DNA of 64,000 nt, from the sequence record MT135025.1, one strand, 5' to 3'. Each line of letters opens with the position of its first letter. Position 1 is the first letter of the stretch. The notes under the pieces were generated by a model, which saw nothing but the letters and a program-made list of their open reading frames with translations, was not told where the DNA came from and did no database searches. Both the position numbers and the translations under genes were made by a program. Shown here piece by piece: positions 18,239 to 59,580 of the stretch.

Positions 18239-18505
18239 ATGCTAAAGTCTTTTATTGAAATATCACTGAACGAAATGACATACCAAGAGTTGCGTGATCT
18301 CACGATCAATGAGATTCACGCGCTCGTTAAGAAGCTGAAGAAACAGCTTCCGAAGAAGTACAAAGACATTATCGACGAACTAGAACCAGACATGTATGAA
18401 GATCTGATTGCAGAAATCGCATATGATGGTGGGTTAAAAGGTAAGAAATTTGTCAACTTAAAAATCCCGAAGCGAATCTTAGATAGGTACGCTGACTACT
18501 TCTGA
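18239..18505 (+). CDS. Candidate internal head protein
   Basis: Leader MLKSFIEISLNE; ATTAAATA late-like box at 18213-18220; Lys-rich. Confidence 0.5.
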   Translation: MLKSFIEISLNEMTYQELRDLTINEIHALVKKLKKQLPKKYKDIIDELEPDMYEDLIAEIAYDGGLKGKKFVNLKIPKRILDRYADYF

Positions 18506-18515
18506 GAGAAATATT

Positions 18516-18908
18516 ATGTTTGATGCTGCTAGTATGCGGGCCCGTTATAAGCCGAAACAACCGTCCGACCTTCAGATGCAGAAAATCGAAGAATTTCAAG
18601 ATTTTTTGTATAACACTCTGCAATCAATTGATAAAATAGCTGATACGGAACTTGAGATAAAAGTCGGCGTAAAAGCTGAATTTTATGAATCAGCGGTTGT
18701 AGAATTTGAGAAATTAGGTTACAATATCAGAGCAGTGAAGAAGACATTCGATATTGAAAATCGAATCAATCCTCACGAGCCGGCAGAAATCGGTCACTTA
18801 AAGTACGAAACTCACAGTTTAGCACTTGCTTATGTGAATCGTATGTTGAGAGAACGAGGCTCTGAACACATGATATTGACGATAATTGATTGGAGACGTA
18901 ATGCATGA
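18516..18908 (+). CDS. Hypothetical protein
   Basis: ORF; weak similarity to EARAR family. Confidence 0.75.
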   Translation: MFDAASMRARYKPKQPSDLQMQKIEEFQDFLYNTLQSIDKIADTELEIKVGVKAEFYESAVVEFEKLGYNIRAVKKTFDIENRINPHEPAEIGHLKYETHSLALAYVNRMLRERGSEHMILTIIDWRRNA

Positions 18909-19168
18909 TTATGAAAGCCGAAGAAGCACGAGCACGCAGCATCAAAGTAATGGAAGAGAAATTTCCAGTTGACGATCTAGAACATCTAGATGAGCGCATT
19001 GCACAAGCAACCGACGAAATGCGTTTTGGTATTAATATTCGAATTCGCGACGAAATGCCAGGTATCAATAGCCACAGCCTGAAACGACTATTGATTGAAT
19101 ATCTGCGTTTGCACAATTACAACGCATTTTATGTTGATGACATCTTGGAGATTCGATGGCAAATTTAA
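18905..19168 (+). CDS. Hypothetical protein (EARAR family)
   Basis: Similar to 17776..18006. Confidence 0.75.
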   Translation: MIMKAEEARARSIKVMEEKFPVDDLEHLDERIAQATDEMRFGINIRIRDEMPGINSHSLKRLLIEYLRLHNYNAFYVDDILEIRWQI

Positions 19169-19884
19169 AGGTTTATTACTGTAGTGATATTCATAATGAT
19201 TATCACGACGAAAACGCGCTAGAACGCATTACAGGCGACAAAGACGCTGTATTGGTAGTAGCGGGTGACATTAACAGCAAAGGGCGAACAGTGCGCGATT
19301 TAGAAGCTGTCGCCGACCGCTGGCGTGCTATTATCGCAGTGCCGGGAAATCACGATTGGTGGGGTCTTGCGATTCACGAGCGACACAAATTTGAAACTTC
19401 GGTTGACAATGTTCACGTATTGCTTGAAGATACAGTTCAGATTGACGATGTGACATTCTGCGGGACTACGCTGTGGCACGAAGTCAATGACTGGTTTGAA
19501 GGTCAACGCTGGAAAGAAAACATGAACGACCGTCGTAAGATTCGCGGTCCTCAATGGCGACCTTTGTATGGTGAAGATGTTCACGCGCTTCATTGTCAAT
19601 CAGTAAAATTTATCGAGAAATGTCGCGAGATTGAAGGTAAGAAAGTGTTAATAACACATCACGCCCCGTCTCTGAAGAGCATTTCATCTTACTATGCGTA
19701 CTCAAGTACGAATAGTTTTTATTGCACTGACCTTGAGCATTTGCTTGAAGGATTCAACTTTGCAATTCACGGTCATGTTCATCAAGAATTTGACTATCAC
19801 GTAAACGGCTGTAATGTACTGTGTAACCCACGTGCATACGGCTCAGAAAACCCGGATTACGGGCTTAGGATTTTCGACATATGA
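19156..19884 (+). CDS. Calcineurin-like metallophosphoesterase
   Basis: SDIH, AGD, PGNHD, THH, HGHVH, CNPRAY. Confidence 0.92.
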   Translation: MANLKVYYCSDIHNDYHDENALERITGDKDAVLVVAGDINSKGRTVRDLEAVADRWRAIIAVPGNHDWWGLAIHERHKFETSVDNVHVLLEDTVQIDDVTFCGTTLWHEVNDWFEGQRWKENMNDRRKIRGPQWRPLYGEDVHALHCQSVKFIEKCREIEGKKVLITHHAPSLKSISSYYAYSSTNSFYCTDLEHLLEGFNFAIHGHVHQEFDYHVNGCNVLCNPRAYGSENPDYGLRIFDI

Positions 19885-20069
19885 CTTTTATTCTTGGTTA
19901 CTTACTAATCGGTGCTTTGCTTACTATTGCTATCAACCCTCAATTGAGTAAGCACTTCAAGCAAATGGGTGGTGAAAGCATCATTCTTATGAATGTAGCA
20001 TCGGTAGTACTATCGCCTATATTCGTAGTTATTCTGCTGATTAAAAAGCTGTTTGGTAAACTAAAATAA
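19881..20069 (+). CDS. Small membrane protein
   Basis: Two hydrophobic segments. Confidence 0.7.
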   Translation: MTFILGYLLIGALLTIAINPQLSKHFKQMGGESIILMNVASVVLSPIFVVILLIKKLFGKLK

Positions 20070-20114
20070 CGTATTAAATACGTGCGTCTAATAATAACGT
20101 AAAAGGTAATACAA

Positions 20115-20360
20115 ATGACGCACGATTTGAATATGCTTCTTGAGCAGTACAACCTCGCGAATTACGATTGCGACGGTGATTTTGAAGACTATTACTGGTC
20201 GGTGGCAGAATGGATTGGTCAGACTGTCTTTAGTCACGGTACAATTCGTAAACACGATATTCTTGAACTGCTTTGCGATTTACTTGAAATATCTGAAGAC
20301 CAAATCAACGTAGATGACGTTGACGATTTTCTAACCGAAGTTTATGAGGTGATTGAATAA
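20115..20360 (+). CDS. Hypothetical acidic protein
   Basis: ORF. Confidence 0.7.
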   Translation: MTHDLNMLLEQYNLANYDCDGDFEDYYWSVAEWIGQTVFSHGTIRKHDILELLCDLLEISEDQINVDDVDDFLTEVYEVIE

Positions 20361-20420
20361 TGAAGAAAATTCATCGTAAGGAGCTGTTTCACTGAGTAAT
20401 TTAACTCGGAGAAACAGCAA

Positions 20421-20933
20421 ATGACTGAAGTCAAAAAATACAAAGGCGTAAAAGAAAACGAACTACCAATCTACAATTCTCGTGAAATGCGCTACAGATA
20501 CATTTACAAGGTAGATGAAGGTTCATGGGTACCAGAGTGGGCTAGAACATACGTTCGTTACGAACGTTTCTGGATGATGCGTCTAGAAGTCGGGTTTTAC
20601 ATTGCCGACGAAGCAAGTCGCAAACTAGATCTGATTCGCAAAGCCGAACGTCTTGCATCATACAAAGGTAACTACGTTTTCCGTTACACGCCAGTGCCAC
20701 ATACAGGTGGCTACAAGAACTGGGTATCAACCATTCGAGGGAAGGGGTTGATGTCTGAGATCCATCACAATAAGATTTGCAAAGACGAAATTGAGCCAGA
20801 ATACGGTAATGTCGTACGCAAAAAGCGTGATAAACTAGTGCGCTGTCTTAGAGATTGGGATGGTCTAGAGTCGTATCATTCACAGGAACGCGGTTGGAAA
20901 CGTTCTAAGAAGCGTAAGCAGTGGATGAAATAA
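20421..20933 (+). CDS. Hypothetical basic protein
   Basis: ORF; SD lies within hairpin 20383-20418. Confidence 0.75.
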   Translation: MTEVKKYKGVKENELPIYNSREMRYRYIYKVDEGSWVPEWARTYVRYERFWMMRLEVGFYIADEASRKLDLIRKAERLASYKGNYVFRYTPVPHTGGYKNWVSTIRGKGLMSEIHHNKICKDEIEPEYGNVVRKKRDKLVRCLRDWDGLESYHSQERGWKRSKKRKQWMK

Positions 20934-20938
20934 TGAAG

Positions 20939-21005
20939 AAAAGGGTTGCAATTCGCAGCCCTTTTTAGTATCATACAGTAGATTCACATTGAGAGATATA
21001 TTATG
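20939..21005 (+). promoter_or_regulatory. Terminator/promoter fusion cassette
   Basis: aaagggttgc-aattc-gcagcccttt; TTGCAA-N17-TATCAT. Confidence 0.75.
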
Positions 21006-21599
21006 ACTGATAAGAAACAAAAACCAACTCTAATTTTTGACGTAGATGGTGTTCTAATTGATTGGGCAAGCCAGCTACCGTTATTCTGCAAACGCTGCGG
21101 AATCGACCCTGTTCGTGCGCTGAAGCATTTCACAGCGAAAGAACACGTTGACGTACGCGACCTATTCGGCGTTGAACAACGCTCAATTGCATTCGATTTG
21201 CTTGAGAAATACAATCTCGAACATGGCAAATACATGACTGCTTTCCCAGATGCTGTCGAGCACGTACACAAAATCGCCAAAGAGTACAATCTAGTCGCAT
21301 TGACTAAATTCGGTGACACTACAGATCACTGGCTAGTTCGCAAGTTTAATCTTGAGACGTTCTTCCCTGGGTGTTTCAGTGAGTTGATCACAATTCGCGG
21401 TGATGAGAGCAAAGTCGGGTATGTTGCTGCATTACAAGCAGATCATAATGTAGTTGGTTTTATCGACGACCAGCTTGAGAATATTCAAGCAATCGGTCGA
21501 GCAACGAATCTAAAAACGATTCATCTAAACCGCTACGATGAACGCGCTGATGTTCATCACATGTCGAAGCTATTAGACTTTCTTCACGAAAAAGTTTAA
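21003..21599 (+). CDS. 30.2: gp30.2-like HAD-superfamily hydrolase
   Basis: LIFDVDGVLIDW, KFNLETFFPGCFSE, FIDD. Confidence 0.8.
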   Translation: MTDKKQKPTLIFDVDGVLIDWASQLPLFCKRCGIDPVRALKHFTAKEHVDVRDLFGVEQRSIAFDLLEKYNLEHGKYMTAFPDAVEHVHKIAKEYNLVALTKFGDTTDHWLVRKFNLETFFPGCFSELITIRGDESKVGYVAALQADHNVVGFIDDQLENIQAIGRATNLKTIHLNRYDERADVHHMSKLLDFLHEKV

Positions 21600-21623
21600 T
21601 ACAGCAATAACTCATCGTATAAT
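21594..21623 (+). promoter_or_regulatory. Class B promoter (ligase operon)
   Basis: GTTTAA-N18-TATAAT. Confidence 0.65.
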
Positions 21624-21646
21624 AAAGCTCCGTTTGGGGCTTTTTT
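21624..21646 (+). terminator. Intrinsic terminator overlapping the class B start site
   Basis: aaagctcc-gttt-ggggcttt plus T tract. Confidence 0.7.
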
Positions 21647-23432: not shown

Positions 23433-23456
23433 AAAAGGGGCTTTCGCCCCTTTTTT
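23433..23456 (+). terminator. Intrinsic terminator
   Basis: aaaaggggc-tttc-gcccctttt. Confidence 0.88.
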
Positions 23457-23458
23457 CG

Positions 23459-23466
23459 TATAAATA
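23459..23466 (+). promoter_or_regulatory. T4-type late promoter
   Basis: TATAAATA exact. Confidence 0.85.
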
Positions 23467-23489: not shown

Positions 23490-24371
23490 ATGATTATATT
23501 CGAAGATATTAATCCGCTGTGTGAAGCATTTGATCGCCCAGCACCATACAAATGGGATTCTATGTACAACGAAGCTCGATTTACGGTTGGGAACGTTCAG
23601 TATGTCGCGTTTATCAAAGATAATGACACAGCAAGAGGTTTAAGTCTGTATGTGGCATTCCAGCGTCGTGATAACGCAACTGGTCAATGGACTCACTCAC
23701 TTGCTAAAGGCTCGCCGAAAGACGCCATGACGGTATTGAGCACAATACTGGCAGCAACATTTGACAAGGCATCAAAAGTTGAACCGAATGAAATTACATT
23801 CAGTGCATTTCGTGACGCAGATGACGAAGACGCAAATAAGCGTTTTAGGCTATACAAGCGTATGGCTGAGCGATACGCAAAGCAAATGAATTACACAGTT
23901 CATATCACTGGTAATAGCTTCACACTAACAAACAACAATCCACCTAAGATCAGACGACTCCACAATGACGGCATTCACAAAGAAGATGGACTTACATACG
24001 TAAATTTCCCTGCTTGTAATGCCTTTACATGGGCGAAGATTTTCTGGCTTGACAATGACGGCGATTACATCAAACTTACATTGCCTCACGGTCGTATTCA
24101 CATTGTGAGAAAATCAAGTGACGTGATTGAAATCGAAGCAATTACACCGAAAGGTCGTTTTGACAATCTAGATTCAGATGAGATTTGGATGTCGATGTTA
24201 TCTGATATTAAAGTGAAAGCTAGAGGCGGAAGCACATTTACTATATCAGAGAAAGGCGCGATTTTAGATGCGGGTGATATGATTTTGTGTGAGCAAGGTA
24301 CGTTTTATTACCTAAGTTCTGAAGATGATTTCAAAGAAATCTGGGGATATGAAATCGACTCGATTGAATAA
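23490..24371 (+). CDS. Late protein, paralog of 58927..59580; candidate virion-packaged
   Basis: Leader MIIFEDINPLCE; motifs shared with 58927. Confidence 0.8.
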   Translation: MIIFEDINPLCEAFDRPAPYKWDSMYNEARFTVGNVQYVAFIKDNDTARGLSLYVAFQRRDNATGQWTHSLAKGSPKDAMTVLSTILAATFDKASKVEPNEITFSAFRDADDEDANKRFRLYKRMAERYAKQMNYTVHITGNSFTLTNNNPPKIRRLHNDGIHKEDGLTYVNFPACNAFTWAKIFWLDNDGDYIKLTLPHGRIHIVRKSSDVIEIEAITPKGRFDNLDSDEIWMSMLSDIKVKARGGSTFTISEKGAILDAGDMILCEQGTFYYLSSEDDFKEIWGYEIDSIE

Positions 24372-24401: not shown

Positions 24402-26066
24402 TCATGGTGTCAGAGGACTACGTTCTTTCACTTTGCGGTCTTCGTCGATTTCAATATCAACAACTCGCATGAAGTTAGCAACTTGCGCTAACTCACTCAA
24501 ACGTTCCTGCTTTTTGTAAGCAGACAGGACGCCGCTTTTCGATGAATTGTCTTTGGCTTTCAAGCGAATCACCGCATCGAATTCTGATAATTGAACAACG
24601 TCGGCTTCGAACATCGTATTACGGTTGATGATGAAATCACAATCGCCTTTCTTCCCGTATTTGCCTGGTGCTAAAACAGGTAACCCGTCAGACTCAATAA
24701 CAAACACAACGTTCAGTTTTCTGTCAGATTCGAGCATATCACGCATAATTGATTTGCTATTCTTGCTCGTCGCGTTGACGATTGTTTTCGCGCTAGATTC
24801 AACAAAGTCACATACAACAAATGGATCAGTTGATGATGTGATGAACGCAGTTGAAACGAACGCGCCAGATTCAAGAATCGAGCCGACACGTTTGCTAGAC
24901 ATTTCACAACCACGATATAGCGTAACGCCATTCGACACCTTACCAGCTTCATAGAAAGCTCGGTCTAAGCGAGAAATTGCATCCCTAACCTTTTCATCAC
25001 CTGCGCCGTGAACTAACTCTTCATTGACCTTCCACGAATAACGAGACGCAGAATAGCGAGAAATTGCAGCTTGAGTAAGAGAAGATAGACCAGCATATGA
25101 ATCTTCTTGCATCATTTGCAACGATAATTGGTCATATTGCTTCTCAAACGCACGTGAACGGGCTTTTAACAGTGCGCCGCATACTTCGCTAATCAAGTTA
25201 GCTTTAACGCCCTCAGAGCGTGCAGCGTCGATATATGGGTTCATTCGTTCTGCTACATCAACAAGGTCGATGTTCATATCAACAATTGCTTGAGCAGCGT
25301 TAGCCAATTTCGTTAGACCGTCAGTTGCTGCCGCTTCTGTTAATTGCTGCTTGATAGATGCACTGACCCGCGCTTCCAGTTGTGGCATTTGTAGAATTTG
25401 ATTTGGGACGCGAACGGCAGGGTTTTCTTCTACCCATTGACCTAGAACATCATCTTCATAATCATCATAGCCAGCATCGGCAGTCACGATGATTGTTTTC
25501 TTGCTTGAAATGTCAGTCTCTTTCGCCATTTTAGCAGCAAGAATATTGATTGTTTCTTCGGTTGCTTCGACGAGTTTATCAGCGTCATAGCCTGGTTTCG
25601 TGATCACGAAGAAGCTGAAATCTTCAGCCATTTCATTATCACCGACGTTCATGATTTTAGTCGTTTCGCAGCCGTATCGAAGTTTCTTGAACAGCGTTTT
25701 AACACGCATGTCGAACATTTTACCGCTACCGATCTTTTGAATACGCATAGACACAGCGTTGGCGCGTGTTTTCAACATGAAACTTTGGATCAATTTAACC
25801 AATGTTTCTTGAAACTTTTCTTGGTCTCCCATGTCACGAATAGTTAATCCGCCTTTTTTGCCTCGCATTGCTGAGACAGTACAGAACCACGAACGTTTTC
25901 CGCGATTTCCGATGTTTGATTTTGTTTTAGTTGTGAACGAAACTACAACGTCACGAGCTTCGCCTTTCATATCGATCACAAAGAATTTGTTTTCTTTGGT
26001 CGAGCGAGCCGGATAGTAGTCGTACGTTGCGCTCATGTTTTCAGTTAATTGTTGAAATCCAATCAT
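24402..26066 (-). CDS. alt: Alt-like ADP-ribosyltransferase (atypical DxD at the catalytic loop)
   Basis: YS..YSWKVN..L, LDRAF, TLYRGC, FITSST, GDCDFIINRNTMF; next to gene 30 as in T4; leader ..QLTE. Confidence 0.7.
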   Translation of the reverse strand: MIGFQQLTENMSATYDYYPARSTKENKFFVIDMKGEARDVVVSFTTKTKSNIGNRGKRSWFCTVSAMRGKKGGLTIRDMGDQEKFQETLVKLIQSFMLKTRANAVSMRIQKIGSGKMFDMRVKTLFKKLRYGCETTKIMNVGDNEMAEDFSFFVITKPGYDADKLVEATEETINILAAKMAKETDISSKKTIIVTADAGYDDYEDDVLGQWVEENPAVRVPNQILQMPQLEARVSASIKQQLTEAAATDGLTKLANAAQAIVDMNIDLVDVAERMNPYIDAARSEGVKANLISEVCGALLKARSRAFEKQYDQLSLQMMQEDSYAGLSSLTQAAISRYSASRYSWKVNEELVHGAGDEKVRDAISRLDRAFYEAGKVSNGVTLYRGCEMSSKRVGSILESGAFVSTAFITSSTDPFVVCDFVESSAKTIVNATSKNSKSIMRDMLESDRKLNVVFVIESDGLPVLAPGKYGKKGDCDFIINRNTMFEADVVQLSEFDAVIRLKAKDNSSKSGVLSAYKKQERLSELAQVANFMRVVDIEIDEDRKVKERSPLTP

Positions 26067-26098: not shown

Positions 26099-26106
26099 TA
26101 TTTATG
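26099..26106 (-). promoter_or_regulatory. Late promoter variant CATAAATA (alt-like gene)
   Basis: Reverse complement of tatttatg, 33 bp upstream of the start. Confidence 0.55.
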
Positions 26107-27661: not shown

Positions 27662-27682
27662 AGCCCCGAAAGGGGCTTTTTT
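27662..27682 (+). terminator. Intrinsic terminator with GAAA loop
   Basis: agcccc-gaaa-ggggct plus T tract. Confidence 0.9.
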
Positions 27683-27712: not shown

Positions 27713-27763
27713 TTAGTAGAATTAGTGCTTTTAGTAATATTAGAAGTATTAGTAAGATTTGTT
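27713..27763. repeat. 9-bp-period TTAG tandem array
   Basis: TTAG at 27713, 27722, 27731, 27740, 27749; TTTG at 27758. Confidence 0.8.
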
Positions 27764-27790
27764 TAACAAACACCTTGACAGCCGTATAAT
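27761..27790 (+). promoter_or_regulatory. Class B promoter
   Basis: GTTTAA-N18-TATAAT. Confidence 0.65.
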
Positions 27791-27808: not shown

Positions 27809-28048
27809 ATGATAACGATATACACAATTCCTAACTGTGACGGTTGTCGTCACGCTATCGCCCTCTGTAAGTTCAAACACGTCCCGTATACTGTAATCGA
27901 GTTACAGTCACAGACTGACATCGACCAATTACATCAAAAGCTTGGTGGCAATCGCAATATTCGCGTTCCTCTGGCTATGCATGGTGACACATACATCGGT
28001 CACCTGCCTGAATTGAAGAAATGGGTTGATGAACAGACGTATAAATAA
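27809..28048 (+). CDS. Glutaredoxin/thioredoxin-like protein
   Basis: IYTIPNCDGC (CxxC), RVPL..YIG. Confidence 0.88.
   Translation: MITIYTIPNCDGCRHAIALCKFKHVPYTVIELQSQTDIDQLHQKLGGNRNIRVPLAMHGDTYIGHLPELKKWVDEQTYK
28040..28047 (+). promoter_or_regulatory. T4-type late promoter
   Basis: TATAAATA exact. Confidence 0.85.
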
Positions 28049-28106: not shown

Positions 28107-29003
28107 ATGACTGTATCTAATAGTAACGGTTTACCAGACATTGTTACTGTTCAAAAACGACTATATCCGCTGATCTTCACGGAAATCGTTTCTGAACAGC
28201 CAACAAAGCAACCCGTTGCAACTGCTTACGGCTTTAAAGCTGTACCTGAAGCTGATGACGGCAGCGGCTGGACACAATTTGGGTTTAGACTTGATCGTTG
28301 GTATGCTCAAGTTGAATCTTCAAAAATGAAGACTGAAATCTCTCTTGAAACGCTGCAAGATATGCAAGCACTCGGGGTTAGCAATTCAGTGATCGTAGAC
28401 TCACTAGCTGACCAAATTGCTGATGAAATCAATACGTCGATTATCGGTGCGTTGAATAGCATTTCAACTGTTGGTGCTGCACTAACTCTGACGGGTAATA
28501 CTGATTTTGAAAAAGGTCAAGATCTTTATACGAAAGTACACCTAGCAGCGTCTGAAATTGAAAAAACAACTGGTTGTAAAGGCACATATGTCGTTGCGGG
28601 CGGTAAATGTTTCGGTTATTTGACTGGTTGTGGTGTTGTACAGCGAGTTGGCGAATCGGACGTTTACAAAGCATGGTCTGGTTTATACATCGTACACGAC
28701 AAATACGCAACAAGCGATTACGTGACTGTAGGTGTTAAGAAAGACATGGGTGATTATGAAATCTCAAGTCTAGTATTCAGCCCGTATCAATTCGACCAAG
28801 CGAATGACGGCGCGATTGCTTATCAATACAAGGGCACTGACCCGAAATCATTCCACCCTGTGTATGGTGTTATTGCTCGTTACGCACTAACTGTTCCGCC
28901 ACTAGAAGACAATCAGACTGGTGCAGTTGAGATTGATTGGTCGAACTTAGGCGCGCTTGCTAATAGCTCAAAGCTTTCATACACATACGCAGTAACAGTA
29001 TAA
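28107..29003 (+). CDS. 24: Capsid vertex protein (gp23/gp24 fold, short)
   Basis: LIFTEIVSEQPT..GFRLDRW..KMKTEISLETLQDMQA..EINTSII..YGVIARYAL resembles gp23/24. Confidence 0.75.
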   Translation: MTVSNSNGLPDIVTVQKRLYPLIFTEIVSEQPTKQPVATAYGFKAVPEADDGSGWTQFGFRLDRWYAQVESSKMKTEISLETLQDMQALGVSNSVIVDSLADQIADEINTSIIGALNSISTVGAALTLTGNTDFEKGQDLYTKVHLAASEIEKTTGCKGTYVVAGGKCFGYLTGCGVVQRVGESDVYKAWSGLYIVHDKYATSDYVTVGVKKDMGDYEISSLVFSPYQFDQANDGAIAYQYKGTDPKSFHPVYGVIARYALTVPPLEDNQTGAVEIDWSNLGALANSSKLSYTYAVTV

Positions 29004-29533: not shown

Positions 29534-30979
29534 ATGTTAGGTAACTTTGACTCATTTCTGAGTGAAAATCGCCGTCAAACTCAGGGTGGAAAAATCTACC
29601 CTAAGTTTGGTCAAGTTATTGTTGAGCTAGGCACTGCATCTACTGAGTTCAGCAAAGGCAAAGGCGTTGAAACAACTATCGGCATGATGGAGAAGGCAAA
29701 TGAGCTTAAATCTATCATGAACAATAAACTGGCTGAAGATAAAAACGTCGATGAGAAACATTTCGACATCAATCTGAGCGAGAACGTGAGCACGGTTAAC
29801 CTGCTTATGGAAAACGAATTCTTGGCGCTGCCAGCTCATGAGCTACAGCAAGTCAAATCAATGATCATGTGTACTGAAGCACGTCTTCCTAGCATCGTGA
29901 TTAAAGGCGCTTCATTGGATCAAGTTGTAGCTGAAGCAACGAAACTAGGCTACAAGAAAAGTGACATTCACGTTGTTTTCCCGATGCGTGAAATGAAAAT
30001 CAATCTTGCTGACTCTGACAAGATTGTTATTGAATCTCTATCAATTGACGACAATTCAGCGTCTGAGATTCTTTCAATGGCTGAAAACATCGAGCTTGGT
30101 GACGTTTATGTGACTGTAGAATCGGTTGATTCTAAGGCTGAACTGTCTGAAATCACTGAACTGAAGATTAAATCTGGTAAAAATGCGCTGACACTAGCTG
30201 CACTTAACCGCAAGATCATGGATCAGTTTATCGTGAAAGAAGCGAAAGAAGTTTCATATGCACGTGAGCGTAAAGAAGACACTGGTCTCCCAATGCTTGA
30301 AGGGTTCAAGGCATACGATCTGAAACAGAACATCACCATGATTGAACATGCTCAGAACGCATTCACAAAAGAGATTACAGTAGCTCCGCTATCTTCGACT
30401 GCGTGGCAAAATCTTGTTGATGTTAAAGAAGCTTACTTCGATAACGGTTGGAAACTGAAGCACAACAATACAAGCATCGTTCTAACAAACGCTGAACACG
30501 CAATGCGTGCTGGTCGTGTTTGTGAAGAATATCGAGTCGAGCTATCTGAAGCAGGTTATCCTCTTCTTGATATGATCGCAATGATGGAAAGCAAAGGCAT
30601 GACTCGCTTTGATTGTAAATCATTTGCTGAATCAATGATGAAATTCGACGGCTGTGTTACGCCAGAGCGCCAGACTGTGACTGCATTTGTTACTGAATCT
30701 GCTAGTAATCGCGTATTTCACCCGAATATTATGTCAAGCCTACGTCCTGTGACCGAAATGGTTGATGATGTTGACGGTCTAATTCGTGCGCTTGCTAATG
30801 ATCAGTTCAGTACGTTCAAAATCGGACAATCATTCTCTGAATCAATGCTTGACCAAGAAACGCTATACTCTATGATGGAAAGCATTGTTTCTGATGGTGT
30901 TGATGTATCAGTGGACGGGACTTTGATTGAATTCAAAGTGAATGCAACCAATTACCTAATCAATATCGACATCAAATAA
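29534..30979 (+). CDS. Hypothetical protein; candidate virion-packaged; degenerate P-loop-like N-terminus
   Basis: Leader MLGNFDSFLSE; YPKFGQVIVELGTASTEFSKG. Confidence 0.6.
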   Translation: MLGNFDSFLSENRRQTQGGKIYPKFGQVIVELGTASTEFSKGKGVETTIGMMEKANELKSIMNNKLAEDKNVDEKHFDINLSENVSTVNLLMENEFLALPAHELQQVKSMIMCTEARLPSIVIKGASLDQVVAEATKLGYKKSDIHVVFPMREMKINLADSDKIVIESLSIDDNSASEILSMAENIELGDVYVTVESVDSKAELSEITELKIKSGKNALTLAALNRKIMDQFIVKEAKEVSYARERKEDTGLPMLEGFKAYDLKQNITMIEHAQNAFTKEITVAPLSSTAWQNLVDVKEAYFDNGWKLKHNNTSIVLTNAEHAMRAGRVCEEYRVELSEAGYPLLDMIAMMESKGMTRFDCKSFAESMMKFDGCVTPERQTVTAFVTESASNRVFHPNIMSSLRPVTEMVDDVDGLIRALANDQFSTFKIGQSFSESMLDQETLYSMMESIVSDGVDVSVDGTLIEFKVNATNYLINIDIK

Positions 30980-30987: not shown

Positions 30988-31635
30988 ATGAAACAATTTT
31001 GTAATTTTTTAGCTGAAGTTCAGAAATACAGTTCAGCGGCTACGTCGATTCGCGGCAAAGAAGTTGCTGCATTGGTTAAATTGTTCAAGTCAGGCATGTT
31101 CGTGCCTGGCGGAACAGCACTTGACTACGGCGCGGGCAAATACGGTCGTAATGCTGAATTTCTTCGCAGTGAAGGCATTCGCACTTACGCATACGACAAA
31201 TTCAATGGGACATCGGCTGATGGTTGGAACGCAGTTAGCTTAACTATCCCAAATGGTGAGACATTCGATACCGGCTTCACGTCATACGTATTGAACGTTG
31301 TTCCTGAAGAAATCGAAGCAGAAATCATCCGTGATGTTGAGTCTCGTACACGCGGTAAAGTGTTCCATATTACACGCGGTACTGACATCACTCAGACTGT
31401 ATTCAACGTAATCAGCGGTAAGAGCAAGAATGACGTAATGATGCAATTCATTGCTCAAGAATATCCAGAGATTTACGGTCAGATTGTCGCGAACGGTGGG
31501 ACGAAAGAATTGGCTAAAGAGATTGCAACCCGTGGAGTTGTAACAGCTAAAGACAGTTTCCAACGTATTCCAGACCTATCGAAATACGGTTACAAGAAAT
31601 CTGGTTCAGGTGCTTCGGTAGTGTGGACAAAATAA
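30988..31635 (+). CDS. Class I SAM-dependent methyltransferase; candidate virion-packaged
   Basis: ALDYGAGKYGR, AYD, SYVLNVV; leader MKQFCNFLAE. Confidence 0.8.
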   Translation: MKQFCNFLAEVQKYSSAATSIRGKEVAALVKLFKSGMFVPGGTALDYGAGKYGRNAEFLRSEGIRTYAYDKFNGTSADGWNAVSLTIPNGETFDTGFTSYVLNVVPEEIEAEIIRDVESRTRGKVFHITRGTDITQTVFNVISGKSKNDVMMQFIAQEYPEIYGQIVANGGTKELAKEIATRGVVTAKDSFQRIPDLSKYGYKKSGSGASVVWTK

Positions 31636-50542: not shown

Positions 50543-50585
50543 AGTTTTCATCTAAATAGAAGAAACAACACAAAAAGGTATCATA

Positions 50586-52037
50586 ATGAAACTGTTTACT
50601 GAATTTTATCAAGAAGTTCGACTTGACGAAATCTCAGATCGTGCGAATATCGACATTGATTGGGATTGGGGTCATGAGAACGGTACGGGAGAAACTTCGG
50701 CGAGATTTGACGCAGCCGGTGAGAAATTCCAAGTTAGCGTTGACGAGAGTAACCCGGGTTATTTCACGATCACATTCCAGAACTCTAGTGGTTATTCTCA
50801 GACTGGTAGAGCGGGACACTCTGCGGCTGCTGTATTCTCTGGCGTATTGACGACTTTACGTGAATTCACCGAAACGTACGAAGAAGAAATGGGCATGAAA
50901 CCATATGAATATGACTTCAGCGCAGCGTACGAACTACCGCGAAATCACGACTATTACTCATTGGTTAACAATCGTCGCGAGGCAACTCGTTTAGATGAAG
51001 AAAGTAAGAAAAAGCTATTGAAAGACTTGATTTCTCGCCCTATGCTTTACTACGCACTATCGTTGACTTTTGGTAAAGAATACGGCTATTCAACTGAAAT
51101 TAGCGACCGTTGGCTTGCTCGTCTTGCAGGGGGCGCGAATGATTTCCGTTCCGTTCGTAAGAACGTGACTCGAAGCATTCTGTCGATGAATGACAACGAC
51201 GTTAACCAAGCGTTGATGAACATGAGCGGTTCTGTTTCGTTCACTCTTACCAACGAAAACGAACGTCCTAGCAGCTACGACACAGCATTCGGTGGCGGTC
51301 CGTCTCTTGAAGACTACGTTGATGAAGCAGACCAATACCAAATCGAAGCGTGGATCAATGATGGTCGTGAAGATGAAATCATCGAACATGCTGATTGGCA
51401 AACTCTAGTTCGCATTGCGGAATGGGGTCTGATGCACGATGAACTGATTTTCCATGATGATGAAGACGTTCGAAACGCGGTAATTCGCACAGACTACGAA
51501 ATGGGCGAGAAACTAGCCGAATCGCCTGAGTGGGAACATCGTAAACAAGCTGCTGAAAATGGTTTTGGCATTTGGGATCTTGTTCTTGACTCTGACGAAG
51601 ACGTGCGCGAAGCTGCATGGGACTGGTCGTTTGAAAATGACGATGCTGATACTCGAATCACATACGCGAAACGCTACGAAGGCAACTTCGGTCGCGCAAT
51701 GGCTGAAGACGTGTGGGATCGCATGATCGACGATTCAGATGACTATGAAGAGCGTCAATACGTAGCTGAACAAGGTTATCGTCTTGAAGAACTTCTAGCA
51801 GACCATGACGAAGACGTGCGTTCTTCTGCAATCAATGCTGTATTCACGGTAATGGGTCTGGATGGTCGAGAAGCGGCTGAGTTCTTGATGGAAAACTCTG
51901 AACCTTACCAAGAAGAAGTGTTTGAATACGCGATTAACGGTAACTTCGGTCCATCTTTCGATGAAGCACTAATCGAAATTGCTGAAGAAAACGGCGTTGA
52001 TGTTTCTGAGTACAAAGACGAAGAAGACGACGAATAA
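50586..52037 (+). CDS. Late protein with acidic HEAT/LRV-like repeats; candidate virion-packaged
   Basis: TCTAAATA at 50551; leader MKLFTEFYQEVRLDE; repeats D.DEDVR. Confidence 0.75.
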   Translation: MKLFTEFYQEVRLDEISDRANIDIDWDWGHENGTGETSARFDAAGEKFQVSVDESNPGYFTITFQNSSGYSQTGRAGHSAAAVFSGVLTTLREFTETYEEEMGMKPYEYDFSAAYELPRNHDYYSLVNNRREATRLDEESKKKLLKDLISRPMLYYALSLTFGKEYGYSTEISDRWLARLAGGANDFRSVRKNVTRSILSMNDNDVNQALMNMSGSVSFTLTNENERPSSYDTAFGGGPSLEDYVDEADQYQIEAWINDGREDEIIEHADWQTLVRIAEWGLMHDELIFHDDEDVRNAVIRTDYEMGEKLAESPEWEHRKQAAENGFGIWDLVLDSDEDVREAAWDWSFENDDADTRITYAKRYEGNFGRAMAEDVWDRMIDDSDDYEERQYVAEQGYRLEELLADHDEDVRSSAINAVFTVMGLDGREAAEFLMENSEPYQEEVFEYAINGNFGPSFDEALIEIAEENGVDVSEYKDEEDDE

Positions 52038-54342: not shown

Positions 54343-54366
54343 AAAGAGGGGCATTCGCCCCTTTTT
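54341..54366. terminator. Bidirectional terminator
   Basis: aaaaagaggggc-attc-gccccttttt between convergent genes. Confidence 0.82.
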
Positions 54367-55420
54367 ATGGTCTGTAGATCATGTGATTTGAACCCATTCG
54401 TTCCCATGTACCTAGATTCATGCGATTTTTCATTTCAGCGAAGAATGCGGGGTTTGCTCTAATGTCATCAAGTGGCAGTGCAACAACACCTTCAGTTTTA
54501 TGCGCCAATAGCTCTAGTTTATCAAGCAAATCAGACGTTGTACGACCGTCATATTTGAATTGACTGAACCAATAACCAATCTTACTGAATTTCGTATCTC
54601 TTGTGTATTTCACATCAAAGCCTTTCAGAGCATACGCTAAGTTACTTTCTTTACCGTGAAACGGCTTGCGATATGCGCTATGTTCAGCACCAGCACGAGC
54701 AAGCAATCTCTTCTTAGCTGCGTCTGGTAGATTGAACCACCCATCAAAGTTTTTCTTGAAGTTCAACATCCATGCTTCTGGCGTAGCTGGTGAGCCTTTG
54801 AAGTATGCTTTCGTATCAGCAATGGCTTGTGCATAGCGTGCGTTAATCTCATGAGAATAGTTCTGATATTCGTCGTGAGACGCTTCGTGACCGCTTTTAG
54901 CGTGACGGATGAACTCTTTATCAATGTATCCGCGTTTACGCCCTGAGTGTTGATACACGCCCTCTGCGTCGCTTGTCTCGAAGTCTTCAATGTCACCAGA
55001 ACGATAGTTGTCGTAAGCGTGTTGCAGTTCATGTAATGCCGTGCTATACAACTGTGGTTTCTGCAATCTGAATTTCGCCATGATTTGACTAACTGCTGTT
55101 ACTCCAGTTATATCCACGACAAGCTTGAGATACCCTGCTTCTGTGATCGAGTCGTCATGTAATTTGCCATTCCAAACACCGAGTTCGGTTGGGTTATTAT
55201 TGTCTAACTTCAGATATGCTAGAATACCTTCAGCTAGTAATGCATCGAACTCACTCTCACCAGTTCTGATATTCAGAGTTTTTGTGTTGACGGATAGTTT
55301 ATTTGGATCCCATGGTGCTTTACTTAGAGCGCCTTCTAACTGGCGTTCCAATGTATCGACGATGGTTTTTGACGCTTGTTCTAATGCGCGTTGTGATTGT
55401 ACGTTTTCAAAAATAATCAT
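54365..55420 (-). CDS. Zincin-like metalloprotease domain protein; probable late gene
   Basis: STALHELQHAYD (HExxH), Y..HEINAR; CTAAATA on the minus strand at 55453-55459. Confidence 0.7.
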   Translation of the reverse strand: MIIFENVQSQRALEQASKTIVDTLERQLEGALSKAPWDPNKLSVNTKTLNIRTGESEFDALLAEGILAYLKLDNNNPTELGVWNGKLHDDSITEAGYLKLVVDITGVTAVSQIMAKFRLQKPQLYSTALHELQHAYDNYRSGDIEDFETSDAEGVYQHSGRKRGYIDKEFIRHAKSGHEASHDEYQNYSHEINARYAQAIADTKAYFKGSPATPEAWMLNFKKNFDGWFNLPDAAKKRLLARAGAEHSAYRKPFHGKESNLAYALKGFDVKYTRDTKFSKIGYWFSQFKYDGRTTSDLLDKLELLAHKTEGVVALPLDDIRANPAFFAEMKNRMNLGTWERMGSNHMIYRP

Positions 55421-55438
55421 CTTTTTTCTCGAATTCGG

Positions 55439-55500
55439 TTGACTGTATTACTTATTTAGGTTAATATCTCTCTCATCGAAACGAAAGAGAGAACATTATG
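55439..55500 (+). promoter_or_regulatory. Class A promoter and leader; its spacer holds the divergent late box
   Basis: TTGACT-N17-TAATAT; tcatcgaaacgaaagagagaacattATG. Confidence 0.75.
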
Positions 55501-56193: not shown

Positions 56194-56195
56194 TC

Positions 56196-56588
56196 ATGGC
56201 ATACGAAGTAATCAACGGCAAATTGCGTAAAGTAAAGAAAAACAAGCCACGCGACTATGATAAAGAATGGTCAAAGATGCACGAATCTGCCAAGAAGCAA
56301 GTCGAAATCATGGATCGTATTCATGAACGTGAGCGCATTGACCGTCTAGGTACTCGTGAGCGTCACGAAGCAATGATTGACCTTGCTAAACGCAATGAGC
56401 GTAAAGGTAAGAAAGGCGGTGACTGTAACGTAACTCAGTGTCAAAAGCCAGGCGCAAGCTCTTACAACACTGCAATGAGAGCGTATTACTGCGAGTCTTG
56501 TGCTCACGATATTTGGCAAGCAGGTCAACGCGACGGTCGTGACTTCATTCGACCAACACCAGATTACACATACAAGTACGAGGGTTAA
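56196..56588 (+). CDS. Putative Zn-finger protein
   Basis: GGDCNVTQCQ..YYCESCAH. Confidence 0.7.
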   Translation: MAYEVINGKLRKVKKNKPRDYDKEWSKMHESAKKQVEIMDRIHERERIDRLGTRERHEAMIDLAKRNERKGKKGGDCNVTQCQKPGASSYNTAMRAYYCESCAHDIWQAGQRDGRDFIRPTPDYTYKYEG

Positions 56589-56592
56589 TCTC

Positions 56593-56832
56593 ATGGGCGA
56601 TTTTCTATTGGCAATGTTTATCTTCTCGTTCGTAATGGCAAACATCGGTTCGATTTTCATTTGCTTGTATGCGGCATTCAATCGCCAATACAACGTACCG
56701 ATGATCTTAGTTGCACTGTACGGGTTCATGGGTACATTTGTTGTCGGCATCGTGTTCTTTCTGCTGTTCATCTTTGCCAAAATCGAAGAAACGAAATTCT
56801 GGCAAAAACTGTCTAAAATGAGGGAATTCTAA
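56593..56832 (+). CDS. Small membrane protein
   Basis: Two TM segments. Confidence 0.65.
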   Translation: MGDFLLAMFIFSFVMANIGSIFICLYAAFNRQYNVPMILVALYGFMGTFVVGIVFFLLFIFAKIEETKFWQKLSKMREF

Positions 56833-57164
56833 TGCAACAAACTGTATTATTCATCGACTTCCGCAACCCACACACTGCGATTGTCGCCAACACGACATTA
56901 CGAGACAAAAACTTCGATTTGTCGGGTATGGGATTGCGTCGAGCTTGTCAGTCGAACTATATTGCACTTGAGAAGCAAGGCAAATGGCGTTTAGTGAAAT
57001 GTCGTTACATGTTTGGGTTCGAATCTATGGAATTCAACACGCTCGATGGTGTTGTTGCATTCATCAACGCGATTAACATCGACAACAATCAACCATTGAT
57101 TCGTGAAGTTGTTGTTGAAGAAGTCGCACCCGTGTACACTAACATTAAAGTACGAGGTTTATAA
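56832..57164 (+). CDS. Hypothetical protein
   Basis: Coupled ORF. Confidence 0.7.
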   Translation: MQQTVLFIDFRNPHTAIVANTTLRDKNFDLSGMGLRRACQSNYIALEKQGKWRLVKCRYMFGFESMEFNTLDGVVAFINAINIDNNQPLIREVVVEEVAPVYTNIKVRGL

Positions 57165-57445
57165 TGGGATTTGAAACAAAAATTATCTGCTATGCAGCGC
57201 ACGTAACTGAATTTGAGCCAGGATGGGGAACTCGACCAGATGGTTACATCATTGCCAAGACTGAAGCTGATGTTCTGGCAAAAGGCGAGCACATGCGAGA
57301 GATCGCTAAACAATCCAAACACGGCTATGAGTATATCGGTGAAGTCTTTAAGTTCGAACCGACTCAGAAAGCTATTGATGAATTAACCGACCGTGACTAT
57401 ATCTGGACTGGTCGAAACTTTGATGAATGGGGTACTGTACTATGA
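57164..57445 (+). CDS. Hypothetical protein
   Basis: Coupled ORF. Confidence 0.7.
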   Translation: MGFETKIICYAAHVTEFEPGWGTRPDGYIIAKTEADVLAKGEHMREIAKQSKHGYEYIGEVFKFEPTQKAIDELTDRDYIWTGRNFDEWGTVL

Positions 57446-57675
57446 CAATCTTTCTGCTTGTATCATTCTTTCTAGGCGCTTATTTCATGAGCGAACTGCC
57501 ACCAGAATTGCGATACAAAACAACATCGCCTAAGAAACTATGGGCTTCTGCATCACGACTGCAACAAATTGCACTTGTTGTCGGGTTTGTCGGCGTGCTG
57601 TTCTTCTACTTGATTCTAGCTATCCTAATTGGATGGACTAAAGTTAAAGAATCTGACTGGAATCGCAAGGCATGA
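57442..57675 (+). CDS. Small membrane protein
   Basis: Two TM segments. Confidence 0.65.
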   Translation: MTIFLLVSFFLGAYFMSELPPELRYKTTSPKKLWASASRLQQIALVVGFVGVLFFYLILAILIGWTKVKESDWNRKA

Positions 57676-57842
57676 TAGTTCTTCAGCACGAGACTGACGG
57701 GTATATCGTCCAAATTGGATGTGACATTTGTTGCACCCCTGACATTGACAAAGCATCCATGTTCGAAACTGTTGGTGTCGCACAAGAATTCAAAGATCAA
57801 TGGGACTTATGGGACTGGGAAGTTAGAGAGGTCGGCTTATGA
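57672..57842 (+). CDS. Small hypothetical protein (not in ORF track)
   Basis: ATGA overlaps at both ends; MIVLQHETDG.. Confidence 0.6.
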   Translation: MIVLQHETDGYIVQIGCDICCTPDIDKASMFETVGVAQEFKDQWDLWDWEVREVGL

Positions 57843-58027
57843 TGCGTAGGCATGAAATTCAAGAACTAGTTGAGCGTCGCGGGTTTGAATTTCGCGAAGC
57901 AATCAATGAATACAGCGAATCACGTTGGCAAGTCATCGACAATGGTACAGTGGTCTACGAATCATACAATGAATACTGCATTGAAGCATTCTTGCTTGGC
58001 GTAGATTACATCACAGACGCAATTTAA
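57839..58027 (+). CDS. Hypothetical protein
   Basis: ORF. Confidence 0.65.
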   Translation: MMRRHEIQELVERRGFEFREAINEYSESRWQVIDNGTVVYESYNEYCIEAFLLGVDYITDAI

Positions 58028-58047
58028 GCCGCATTTCGCGGCTTTTT
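58026..58047 (+). terminator. Intrinsic terminator
   Basis: aagccgc-attt-cgcggct plus T tract. Confidence 0.75.
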
Positions 58048-58056
58048 GAGGTTCAT

Positions 58057-58359
58057 ATGAAGAAACAAATATTAAACATTCAGCGCGACGATGCGAAATT
58101 CGAGCTATATCGTCAAGGTCAAGCTGCACGTCATGCACGTGCTGAAATCATCCGACACGTTGCGAAGAATCATAACCCATTTCTAGTTGGTCAATACACG
58201 CTTTACAAAGAGCACGACGTGAAAATCGTTCGTCAGTTGCTGCGTTATGCTGAGATAGATGCTGATGTGCGAGTTGTCCCTACGATTGGTCGTTTACCAG
58301 ACTGTTTGAACGAAATTCACGGAATCGGGTTCGAGGTAACGCTAAATAATGATAGTTAA
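58057..58359 (+). CDS. Hypothetical protein
   Basis: ORF with GAGG SD. Confidence 0.7.
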   Translation: MKKQILNIQRDDAKFELYRQGQAARHARAEIIRHVAKNHNPFLVGQYTLYKEHDVKIVRQLLRYAEIDADVRVVPTIGRLPDCLNEIHGIGFEVTLNNDS

Positions 58360-58633
58360 CATTGCTCATCATTCTTTTGATGTGTACATTGGTCGCGGCA
58401 CACCGTTCGGAAATCCATTCAGAGCAGGGATCGACGGCACTCGGAGCGAAGTTATTGAGCTTTATCGAGAGTGGTTGCGCATTCAATTACAAGACGACGA
58501 ATTTAAAAAGCAGTTTATGCAACTAAAAGGAAAGATTCTCGGCTGTCATTGTAAGCCAAAAGCGTGCCATGGCGATGTAATTCTCGAAGAACTTGATAGA
58601 TTGAGCAGCCCACTAAACAATTTTATAGGTTAA
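58349..58633 (+). CDS. DUF4326-family protein
   Basis: VYIGRGTPFGNPF..LGCHCKPKACHGDV. Confidence 0.85.
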   Translation: MIVNIAHHSFDVYIGRGTPFGNPFRAGIDGTRSEVIELYREWLRIQLQDDEFKKQFMQLKGKILGCHCKPKACHGDVILEELDRLSSPLNNFIG

Positions 58634-58636
58634 TCT

Positions 58637-58930
58637 ATGAGAGAAGCAATTGCATTATTAAGCAACACGAGAATGGGATATACTGACATTAGCGCATTTG
58701 GCGATCCAGTATTATATGTTCATGCGGGACATGAGACGGTATTAAAAGTGCAATACACTGAAGATTGCTACTCATTTTACGACTACAGAAGCAAGTATCT
58801 TTATACAGAGCAGTCCATCGACGACTTAGAGATACATTTGAAATCAATAGATGTCGGGTTAGACGATGATCTACCGTTAAATGGTAACATCGACAAAGAC
58901 ACAATACCAGATGGGGAATTTTTAGAATGA
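58637..58930 (+). CDS. Hypothetical protein
   Basis: ORF. Confidence 0.7.
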   Translation: MREAIALLSNTRMGYTDISAFGDPVLYVHAGHETVLKVQYTEDCYSFYDYRSKYLYTEQSIDDLEIHLKSIDVGLDDDLPLNGNIDKDTIPDGEFLE

Positions 58931-59580
58931 AGTTTAGTGAATATCAAAGAATAAACGAATCTCTAGATCGCCCTGCTAATTATAAACTGGTTAGAGAACT
59001 CCCAAATTTAAACGTGTATGCGTTTCAAGTTGGTGGTGTTTATTATGAAATAGACATTCAGAAATCAAACATACGAGAGCCTAACGGGATGCAGTCAATG
59101 AAAGCTGAAGTCTCATTCAAAGCACTCGACGGTAGTGGTTATCAACTAACCAAAAAAGACGATAAAACAGCACGAATTGTACTATCAACCGTAGTTGATG
59201 CTATCTTCAGCTTCGTACGCGAATACAATCCTGCTCAAATATTATATTCCGCATTCAACGATGCTGATCCTTCAGATGCTGCTAAACGACTTCGTTTATA
59301 TCAGATCATGACTAAAGCAAAACTGCGTGAATTCCCCGAATATGATTTCCGAAACGTTGGGCGTGATTTCATCGTCTACGATGTCAATTACCAAAAACGA
59401 GTCGAGGAATTTTCAAGAAGAGCACGTAGACCAGTGGGATATGAAGAAAGATCAGACCACGTTGAAGTGAATTTATCACACGCCAACGCTTTTGCGTTTA
59501 TACGGGCGTTTGGTGTAAATGATGGCGACTCGAAGAGCGGCGTACTAGGTAAAGGTCGAGCTTTCGTAGGAGCAACATGA
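58927..59580 (+). CDS. Paralog of 23490..24371; candidate virion-packaged
   Basis: Leader MKFSEYQRINE; shared motifs. Confidence 0.8.
   Translation: MKFSEYQRINESLDRPANYKLVRELPNLNVYAFQVGGVYYEIDIQKSNIREPNGMQSMKAEVSFKALDGSGYQLTKKDDKTARIVLSTVVDAIFSFVREYNPAQILYSAFNDADPSDAAKRLRLYQIMTKAKLREFPEYDFRNVGRDFIVYDVNYQKRVEEFSRRARRPVGYEERSDHVEVNLSHANAFAFIRAFGVNDGDSKSGVLGKGRAFVGAT

Follow-up and report, generated by a model that had tools for sequence, protein, structure and literature searches.

Candidate capsid-targeted proteins with T4-type leaders in a KVP40-type Vibrio phage

We analysed a stretch of 64,000 nucleotides from sequence record MT135025.1 (Vibrio phage V07), here called the window, for eight open reading frames (ORFs) whose N-termini resemble the capsid-targeting sequence (CTS) of phage T4, the closest described system. 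In T4, internal proteins (IP) I to III carry a propeptide of 10-19 residues of the form M-K-x-(F/Y)-x-x-F-(I/L)-x-E; ipII and ipIII start with MKTYQEFIAE, cut before A, and ipI starts with MKTFKEFTSTTTPVSTITE (MKTFKEF...ITE), likewise cut before A. Amber-suppressor mapping of the IPIII tag assigned residues 4 and 7 to targeting and residues 8 and 10 to processing (PMC9026906). The T4 alt product starts with MELITE and is cut at ITE-6, just before LFD, and also at LTE-619, and is present at about 40 copies per head (PMC5694885). Ejection proteins of the giant phages phiKZ, 201phi2-1 and SPN3US are processed by a gp21-like prohead protease (PMC5694885), and polyvalent or MuF-fused effectors, as well as Dar of phage P1, combine a virion-association module with variable enzymatic domains (ADP-ribosyltransferase, ART; methyltransferase; peptidase) delivered with the DNA (PMC9503650).

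The window (positions 62001-126000 of the record, 100% identity) belongs to a T4-like phage that is 99.3% identical here to KVP40, the type schizoT4 phage of Vibrio parahaemolyticus. It is an early/middle region with almost all genes on the + strand, and two of its three minus-strand genes, 24402c and 54365c, are candidates. A preliminary description of this DNA had listed the eight ORFs with their leaders, and their coordinates, strands and N-termini were confirmed exactly. In order, 18239, 23490, 24402c, 29534, 30988, 50586, 54365c and 58927 correspond to KVP40.0048,.0058,.0059,.0065,.0066,.0097,.0103 and.0115; the KVP40 annotation calls all eight 'hypothetical protein', but several relatives label their counterpart of KVP40.0059 an Alt-type RNA-polymerase ADP-ribosyltransferase. 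The candidate families are kept across the 48-49 schizoT4-type Vibrio phages of the phage collection.

Our preferred reading, held with moderate confidence, is that late-expressed proteins of this KVP40-type phage carry T4-type N-terminal propeptides and follow the T4 IP/Alt route. A leader of 5-15 residues, aromatic at about position 4 and either hydrophobic or aromatic three residues on, would dock the protein on the gp22/gp67/gp68 core during prohead assembly; the phage-encoded gp21-type prohead protease would then cut after the Glu of (I/L)-x-E, freeing the mature protein in the head, and the cargo would exit with the DNA at the next infection. We infer packaging, cleavage at the predicted Glu, injection and an anti-defence or host-takeover role as parts of this reading. 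As with the T4 IP genes, the candidate genes are scattered outside the head cluster, and the KVP40.0058/0115/0116 locus is plastic. KVP40 has gp21, gp22, gp67 and gp68 (KVP40.0359-0362, annotated and read, outside the window), and the N-terminus of its gp21, MELQLLIE, keeps the LIE motif noted in T4 gp21. The features of the window are as follows.

18239-18505, + strand: 18239, 88 aa, KVP40.0048; leader MLKSFIE, a variable spacer of 2-5 residues, then (L/I/F)-x-E before MTYQEL
23433-23466, + strand: terminator-like hairpin, then the canonical late promoter TATAAATA (23459-23466)
23490-24371, + strand: 23490, 293 aa, KVP40.0058; MIIFE, a variable spacer, then L-x-E12 before AFDRPA
24402-26066, - strand: 24402c, 554 aa, KVP40.0059, Alt-like ADP-ribosyltransferase; leader MIGFQQLTE before N
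28040-28047, + strand: late promoter TATAAATA, with gene 24 (head vertex protein) at 28107-29003, 5' of the block of gene 55, 29534 and 30988
29534-30979, + strand: 29534, 481 aa, acidic, KVP40.0065; MLGNFDSFLSE before N
30988-31635, + strand: 30988, 215 aa, methyltransferase-like, KVP40.0066; leader MKQFCNFLAE before V
50551-52037, + strand: box and gene of 50586, 483 aa, KVP40.0097; leader MKLFTEFYQEVRLDE before ISDRAN
54365-55460, - strand: gene and box of 54365c, 351 aa, HExxH motif, KVP40.0103; N-terminus MIIFENVQSQRALEQ
58927-59580, + strand: 58927, 217 aa, part of KVP40.0115; leader MKFSEYQRINE before SLDRPAN

The KVP40-type leaders named as candidate tags are MKQFCNFLAE, MKLFTEFYQEVRLDE, MIIFEDINPLCE, MIIFE and MIGFQQLTE.

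From the T4 CTS positions a stricter motif was derived (aromatic at about residue 4, hydrophobic three residues on, then [IL]xE), with residue-shuffled N-termini as the control. Among the 110 genes of the window its loose form gave 12 matches against 1.58 +/- 1.26 expected; the strict form gave 2 against 0.16, aromatics at i and i+3 with [IL]xE gave 4 against 0.55, and further versions gave 8-10 against 1.1-1.4. The 12 matches comprise all eight candidates together with thymidylate synthase, DNA polymerase, 13354 and 18006, the last four being likely false positives. The targeting positions are matched overall, exactly in two or three candidates and more loosely in the rest. In 30988 all four mapped T4 positions fit (F4, F7, L8, E10); 50586 (MKLFTEFYQE...LDE15) matches both targeting positions, F4 and F7, with LDE ending at residue 15, and 29534 fits the T4 template with a shift of one residue (F5/F8). 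The looser fits are those of 58927 (F3/Y6), of 23490, 24402c and 54365c (F4 with I/L/V7) and of 18239 (F5/I8). At the DNA level, the coding pattern MK.[FY]..[FY] is confined to the three ip genes within 28 kb of T4; in the ~190 kb of KVP40 covered, outside 1-8 kb and 120-150 kb, it occurs at four sites, two of them the starts of.0066 and.0097, and the MIIFE coding pattern occurs only at the starts of.0058 and.0103. The 50-kb KVP40 segment at 150-200 kb gave no match to the leader motif. Five families (23490/58927, 50586, 30988, 24402c and 18239) keep the (I/L)-x-E in their relatives and show a propeptide-like pattern of conserved leader, indel-tolerant free spacer, conserved (I/L)-x-E and conserved mature domain. 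Two leader-like small ORFs were also seen, one at 18006-18221 (+, MSNFLRILE), directly upstream of 18239, and one at 20115-20360 (+, MTHDLNMLLE), with a ATTAAATA box 35 nt upstream.

By profile comparison, 23490, 58927 and 50586 share a DUF6934-like N-terminal domain, which 24402c probably has as well. These three are strong candidates on their sequences, and with 24402c and KVP40.0116, which is not in the window, they rank among the best-supported putative cargo. In 23490 the domain (~14-148) is followed by a beta-rich C-domain. Ten relatives keep MIIFE and E12 and have I or L at P3 without exception, with a spacer that is variable or deleted. Throughout the 0058/0115/0116 family, MIIFE or MKFSE precedes 0-7 variable residues, an invariant Glu and then AFDRPA, P3 being always I or L and P2 free (C, I, V, F, P, N, T); the family is fast-evolving (44-55% identity within the genus), and its copy number and C-terminus vary. 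An AlphaFold2 (AF2) model of 23490 with a predicted local distance difference test score (pLDDT) of 85 has residues 1-13 disordered, an N-domain of the order beta4-alpha-beta-alpha-beta2 and a beta-rich C-domain. Its fold matches in BFVD included Alt-type ARTs of T4-like coliphages and zeta-toxin, deaminase and ParB proteins (aligned target region not reported). The fold search of the PDB returned nothing at E <= 0.001, the best matches being the DNase-I-like domain of RNase E and the acetyl-CoA-binding domain of ICL2, so that a GNAT-like fold for 23490 would be a guess only.

The 58927 product is a paralogue of 23490 (BLASTP 31% identity over 214 aa; phrog_6387) with a DUF6934-like N-domain. 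Its ORF is cut down to 217 aa, against 306 aa in KVP40, and represents the N-terminal two thirds of KVP40.0115; a junction at ~59570-59577 removes its C-terminus and the third paralogue, KVP40.0116 (leader MKFSEYQNELTE before AFDRPA). Left of the junction V07 matches KVP40 to ~67.23 kb, inside KVP40.0115, and right of it V07 follows KVP40 from 72,719 onward (a queF-like, then a queC-like gene; window to 60475). V07 is thus without ~5.5 kb of KVP40 that hold the 3' third of.0115, the paralogue.0116, cd and folE. The V07 record carries the mark UNVERIFIED_ORG and runs to 349 kb, so this gap may reflect faulty assembly rather than true loss of DNA.

In 50586 the DUF6934-like domain (~1-174) is joined to an acidic HEAT/ARM-like C-domain (pI 4.2; HEAT match weak), in agreement with its preliminary description as an acidic repeat protein. 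Its alignment with DUF6934 begins at residue 2 (hhalign probability 96%, E = 2e-9; hidden Markov model, HMM, E = 2.6e-8). The leader end RLDE becomes EETQIFE by an indel in phage 1.081.O, and [IL]xE still stands directly before the conserved SDR(A/S)N.

A search of 1.84 billion representatives with the family profile found 907 clusters (~900 at 50% identity), almost all of them matching only profile positions ~7-145. Either the domain stands alone, in proteins of 140-180 aa, or it is part of longer proteins that reach 2,215 aa and often have 2-5 copies, and its contexts include tandem gene arrays, tandem-repeat proteins and fusions to ART, HEAT-like and other modules. The gathering score of Pfam DUF6934 (PF22028), 27 bits, is not reached by 23490 (17.1 bits) or 58927 (22.6 bits), and PF22028 has no match in 50586 or 24402c; the same model is matched by 16 of 20 aligned relatives and by all nine large profile matches, with E down to 8e-48. 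Since the window proteins stay below the threshold while their relatives match strongly, they would form a divergent DUF6934-like phage branch. A literature search for the function of DUF6934 found nothing.

It is the start of this domain that points to T4. Eighteen free-standing metagenomic members begin with M-x-x-F-x-x-[FYH]-[IL]-x-E before [AS]FD, E being invariant and F4 at least 90% conserved; MKTFKQYIEE and MKRFKEFINE, each before AFD, are examples. The HMM consensus MkkFkefltEa aligns with the T4 ipII/ipIII leader and is nearly identical to the experimentally defined T4 CTS. The T4 cut site in Alt, ITE before LFD, also resembles the DUF6934 boundary, [IL]xE before [AS]FD. In the T4 proteins of the two T4 loci compared no DUF6934-like domain was found; the leader alone aligns. 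In the metagenomic tandem-repeat proteins P0016, P0029 and P0030 every repeat has (I/L/V/M)-x-E ahead of it, with (A/S/L)-F-D-x-P next, and this boundary could be a protease site or a domain feature. One contig, ERZ1426512, has three tandem small genes at 9076-10480 with products of 151, 158 and 159 aa: the 159-aa product P0084 is a DUF6934-like profile match, the 158-aa product is recorded as PF22028 and the 151-aa product has no recorded match. With its helicase, SIR2, guanylate kinase and HNH genes this contig resembles a large phage, and the array recalls the T-even tandem IP loci.

We put forward, tentatively and as a possibility on which we would not yet rely, that the DUF6934-like domain is a widespread unannotated capsid cargo of T4-like and other large myoviruses. 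Its copies would be CTS-addressed units bounded by [ILV]-x-E/[AS]-F-D prohead-protease sites, the tandem-repeat versions would be polyproteins cut in the prohead, and KVP40-type phages would inject a fixed enzyme set (ART, methyltransferase-like, HExxH) together with a variable DUF6934 set.

By homology to T4 Alt, 24402c is a strong candidate for capsid cargo. Its ART domain is of the Alt/VIP2 type (phrog_802, E = 1.4e-88 over residues 279-553; PF03496 recorded for five orthologue clusters), as the preliminary description had proposed, although the protein itself has no Pfam match at E <= 0.1. Like alt, its gene adjoins the DNA ligase gene and has a late promoter and a short leader ending in L-T-E. 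Four lineages share the leader M-I-G-F-Q-x-L-x-E unchanged, and conservation of the protein is highest over its N-terminal 200 residues. Unlike in T4, 24402c is inverted relative to the ligase gene, and only the ART domain aligns with Alt (BLASTP E = 2e-4), the N-terminal halves being not detectably similar. The ART motifs LYRG and STA are invariant, and the last motif is D-C-D in V07 and KVP40 (residue 477, D-C-D-F-I-I-N-R), with Asp as the second ExE-type acidic residue, where six orthologue clusters have Glu; the Alt-like ART of the KVP40 subgroup may have altered or reduced activity.

With its ligase synteny, invariant late box and invariant leader, and as the sole candidate with a characterised packaged homologue, 24402c might be the only capsid cargo of the eight, by descent from a T4-type Alt, the other seven showing a mere resemblance. 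We regard this as improbable, because 23490, 58927 and 50586 bear the CTS-like leader found across the DUF6934 family and 30988 fits all four mapped CTS positions, in both cases independently of Alt.

The 30988 product is a good candidate for capsid cargo on its sequence. Two phages with a 26-residue insertion straight after the leader still keep it, and in 22 distant members of the family (38-50% identity) the Glu at about residue 10 is at least 90% conserved, mostly with I or L at P3. The glycine-rich D46-x-G-A-G-K-Y-G-R and A68-Y-D70 are invariant. Support for its putative assignment as an S-adenosylmethionine (SAM) methyltransferase comes only from homologues, which often carry PF13489 (Methyltransf_23) and form a large, mostly metagenomic family, but the protein itself has no match in Pfam, NCBIfam or PDB. 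A scan of IMG/VR with the single protein found KVP40 and VH7D only, and tblastn against the phage collection was used in its place. A distant member lies at 6001-6651 of a metagenomic contig (L022, GC 33%) from a phage unrelated to KVP40, between the genes for the major head protein (phrog_138) and head closure (phrog_218). Another (L023) lies beside a second 215-aa gene among RNA-ligase, Thg1 and TROVE-like genes, a nucleotide/RNA-repair context.

As capsid cargo, 18239 and 54365c are moderate candidates, and 29534 is a weak one, all judged from sequence. Sequence searches of Pfam, NCBIfam and PDB with the eight proteins and two family profiles gave no significant match. The 18239 protein is 83-100% identical in 48 phages; at an overall identity of 84-95%, only residues 8-11 vary, with indels, and E12 is invariant. 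The 54365c product shares MIIFE with the unrelated 23490, and only I-F-E-5 is kept among its relatives. It had been called a zincin: the motif HELQHAYD...HEINARY is indeed invariant in its orthologues, but Pfam, NCBIfam and PDB gave no family match for the protein, and it is kept as a motif only. The motif is shared with 20 distant IMG/VR contigs (L026-L045), many of 125-365 kb, a jumbo-phage size, in which the core HELQHAYD...HEIN(A/T)R(Y/F) is kept; on this comparison the HExxH core defines a widespread unannotated phage protein family. The kinase-like label given to 29534 was dropped, the protein having no significant match in Pfam, NCBIfam or PDB, and neither 29534 nor 18239 has an assignable function.

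The second line of evidence comes from candidate late promoters. The canonical TATAAATA occurs three times in the window, once at 28040 before gene 24 and once at 23459, 24 nt before 23490 and after a terminator hairpin; T4 alt has the same upstream layout of hairpin and TATAAATA. A CATAAATA box lies 33 nt upstream of 24402c, and CATAAATAC at 26099-26106(-) is invariant in four lineages with diverged flanks, phage 1.081.O included. For 50586 the box is TCTAAATA (50551-50558), 28 nt before the gene and after a terminator hairpin, and is kept in three of four phages; for 54365c it is CCTAAATA (55453-55460, -), 33 nt before the gene, its CTAAATA being invariant in four phages. Conserved late boxes precede 23490, 24402c, 54365c and 50586, and the genes of 24402c and 54365c are antisense to the surrounding early genes. 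The box of 18239, ATTAAATA at 18213-18220, lies 19 nt before the gene and is invariant, and it is ambiguous because it overlaps the stop codon of the upstream gene. The box scan of the window found none of their own for 29534 and 58927. The late boxes of the preliminary description were therefore all present, as was the promoter at 28040, and 58927 was without one, as it had said.

An nnTAAATA box precedes 5 of the 12 motif genes and 7 of the 98 others (Fisher P = 0.003). The window has fewer copies of TAAATA than its shuffles (20 against 35.5 +/- 6.6), and 12 of the 20 stand no more than 60 nt before the start of a gene in the same orientation, a depletion and placement that fit selection against stray late promoters in the early region. 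In the structural region of KVP40 only five boxes are canonical, and gp9, gp19 and inh have nnTAAATA variants 20-45 nt upstream; since known KVP40 late genes carry such variants, those of the window are plausible promoters. That every nnTAAATA is a late promoter was also considered, and after this check on known late genes the boxes were kept as supporting evidence only.

Several results weigh against the preferred reading of T4-type propeptides. The bare criterion, [IL]xE ending at residues 5-16, was found in 24 of the 110 window genes against 18.0 +/- 3.5 expected from internal windows of the same proteins; this is chance level, and the set includes thymidylate synthase, DNA polymerase, the gp44 clamp loader and RNA ligase. 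The motif (I/L)-x-E, which the preliminary description had used as diagnostic, hence cannot single out the candidates. The stricter motif was chosen after the candidates had been seen, and it still catches DNA polymerase and thymidylate synthase. In 29534, E11 is Ala in phage 1.081.O and the N-terminus lies within one continuous conserved block; the N-terminal helix of 54365c likewise shows block-wise conservation that extends to a distant IMG/VR relative, like a part of the fold. The recurrence of [ILVM]xE before [AS]FD at internal repeats means that it may be a domain feature and not a cleavage site. The N-domain of 24402c matches the DUF6934 profile weakly (E = 0.004 among 110 proteins; hhalign probability 37%), the 0058-family profile has no match in the Alt N-domain of KVP40 or in T4 Alt, the broader DUF6934 alignment aligns with T4 Alt over 18 residues only, which gives no sequence-level link, and the AF2 model of the Alt-like N-domain (pLDDT 52) is too poor for fold use. 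Further, 29534 and 30988 come directly after gene 55 with no gap and behind a sigma70-like promoter at 27763-27790 (+; TTAACA-16-TATAAT, 11 of 12 matches), itself preceded by a terminator at 27662-27677. Their products are therefore probably made both early and late, and late-only expression of the two is not upheld. Besides the late promoter at 28040, this one would drive early transcription of nrdH, 24, 55, 29534 and 30988. The T4 IPs are small, basic and fast-evolving; most candidates, in contrast, are large proteins of neutral or acidic character, and several belong to the strongly conserved core genes. The literature search found no virion proteome or transcriptome of KVP40-type phages and no paper on KVP40 internal proteins.

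Some of these points would also be expected if the N-termini were shared for reasons other than packaging, as an N-terminal amphipathic helix or strand of each fold, by a translation-initiation preference or by chance, the proteins then working as ordinary late or early accessory enzymes in the cytoplasm of the producing cell. The chance level of bare [IL]xE, the housekeeping enzymes among the stricter matches, the domain-like recurrence at internal repeat starts, the block-like N-termini of 54365c and 29534 and the probable early transcription of 29534 and 30988 all speak for it. We consider it unlikely, since it leaves unexplained the 12 leader matches against 1.6 expected from shuffled N-termini and the association of the motif with late boxes. 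The pattern seen in five unrelated families, in which leader and Glu are conserved on either side of a free spacer, is unlike a structural element, the leader is disordered in the confident 23490 model, and the DUF6934 consensus lies very close to the T4 CTS.

A different role inside the prohead must also be weighed. The proteins could be targeted to the prohead and cut by gp21 but not injected, serving as core or scaffold accessories that are cleared like gp67 and gp68, or as retained DNA-packing or capsid-stabilising parts. That many candidates are large, conserved core genes leaves room for such a part in the structure or assembly of KVP40's unusually large head. Indeed 18239, 29534, 30988, 50586 and 54365c are core in all 48-49 schizoT4-type Vibrio phages, often at 80-100% identity, unlike arms-race cargo; KVP40 gp68 starts with MKFISE, close to 58927; 50586 is very acidic, like the T4 internal peptides; a member of the methyltransferase-like family sits among head genes; and the KVP40 head is larger than that of T4, its size determinants being unknown (PMC3012670). 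Enzyme-like payloads (ART, methyltransferase-like, HExxH), however, fit effectors better, injection is established for T4 Alt, the nearest relative that has been characterised, and the fast evolution and variable copy number and C-terminus of the 0058/0115/0116 family are like those of the T4 IP loci, so that we rate this alternative as quite unlikely.

Set beside the described systems, the T4-type propeptides that we favour share features with each of them. With T4 IPI-III the sequence similarity ends with the leader: the KVP40 payloads are of 22-60 kDa and partly enzyme-like, the candidates are mostly conserved core genes, and they are known here from sequence alone. The giant-phage ejection proteins are likewise diverse head-internal proteins, enzymes included, with an N-terminal propeptide cut after Glu and paralogues that share N-termini (PMC5694885), but their propeptides often exceed 100 residues, their motif is (S/A/G)-x-E and not (I/L)-x-E, and no sequence relationship was found. 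Polyvalent, MuF-fused and P1 Dar proteins resemble the set in their modular build, DUF6934-like domains occurring, often repeated, in proteins of up to 2,215 aa; in the KVP40 set, in contrast, the common element is a short leader, with or without the DUF6934-like domain, and the large DUF6934-like proteins scanned had no MuF or other named polyvalent-protein domain.

The proposal of a candidate capsid-targeted set therefore stands on leader fit, conservation, boxes and the DUF6934-like domain, with the exception of 29534, for which the change of E to Ala and co-transcription with gene 55 speak otherwise. To call the set an undescribed system, as had been suggested, is too strong, because the mechanism proposed for it is the one already described for the T4 internal proteins, with their CTS, and for Alt; relatives, moreover, have annotated Alt homologues. 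Two things appear to be new in the literature searched: CTS-like leaders on methyltransferase-like, HExxH and ARM-like proteins of KVP40-type phages, and a probable connection of the large DUF6934-like family, through its N-terminus, with the T4 CTS.

Phages of the KVP40 type infect a broad range of Vibrio hosts and are used for biocontrol in aquaculture; their annotations list no internal proteins. If the proteins described here are loaded and injected, they would act before any phage gene expression and would be prime candidates for host-range and counter-defence functions. The T4 capsid-targeting tag would then be conserved far beyond the T-even phages, and DUF6934, a large domain family of unknown function, would gain its first functional handle. 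The rule of a leader with (I/L)-x-E before a conserved domain could, if true, predict capsid cargo in other large phages.

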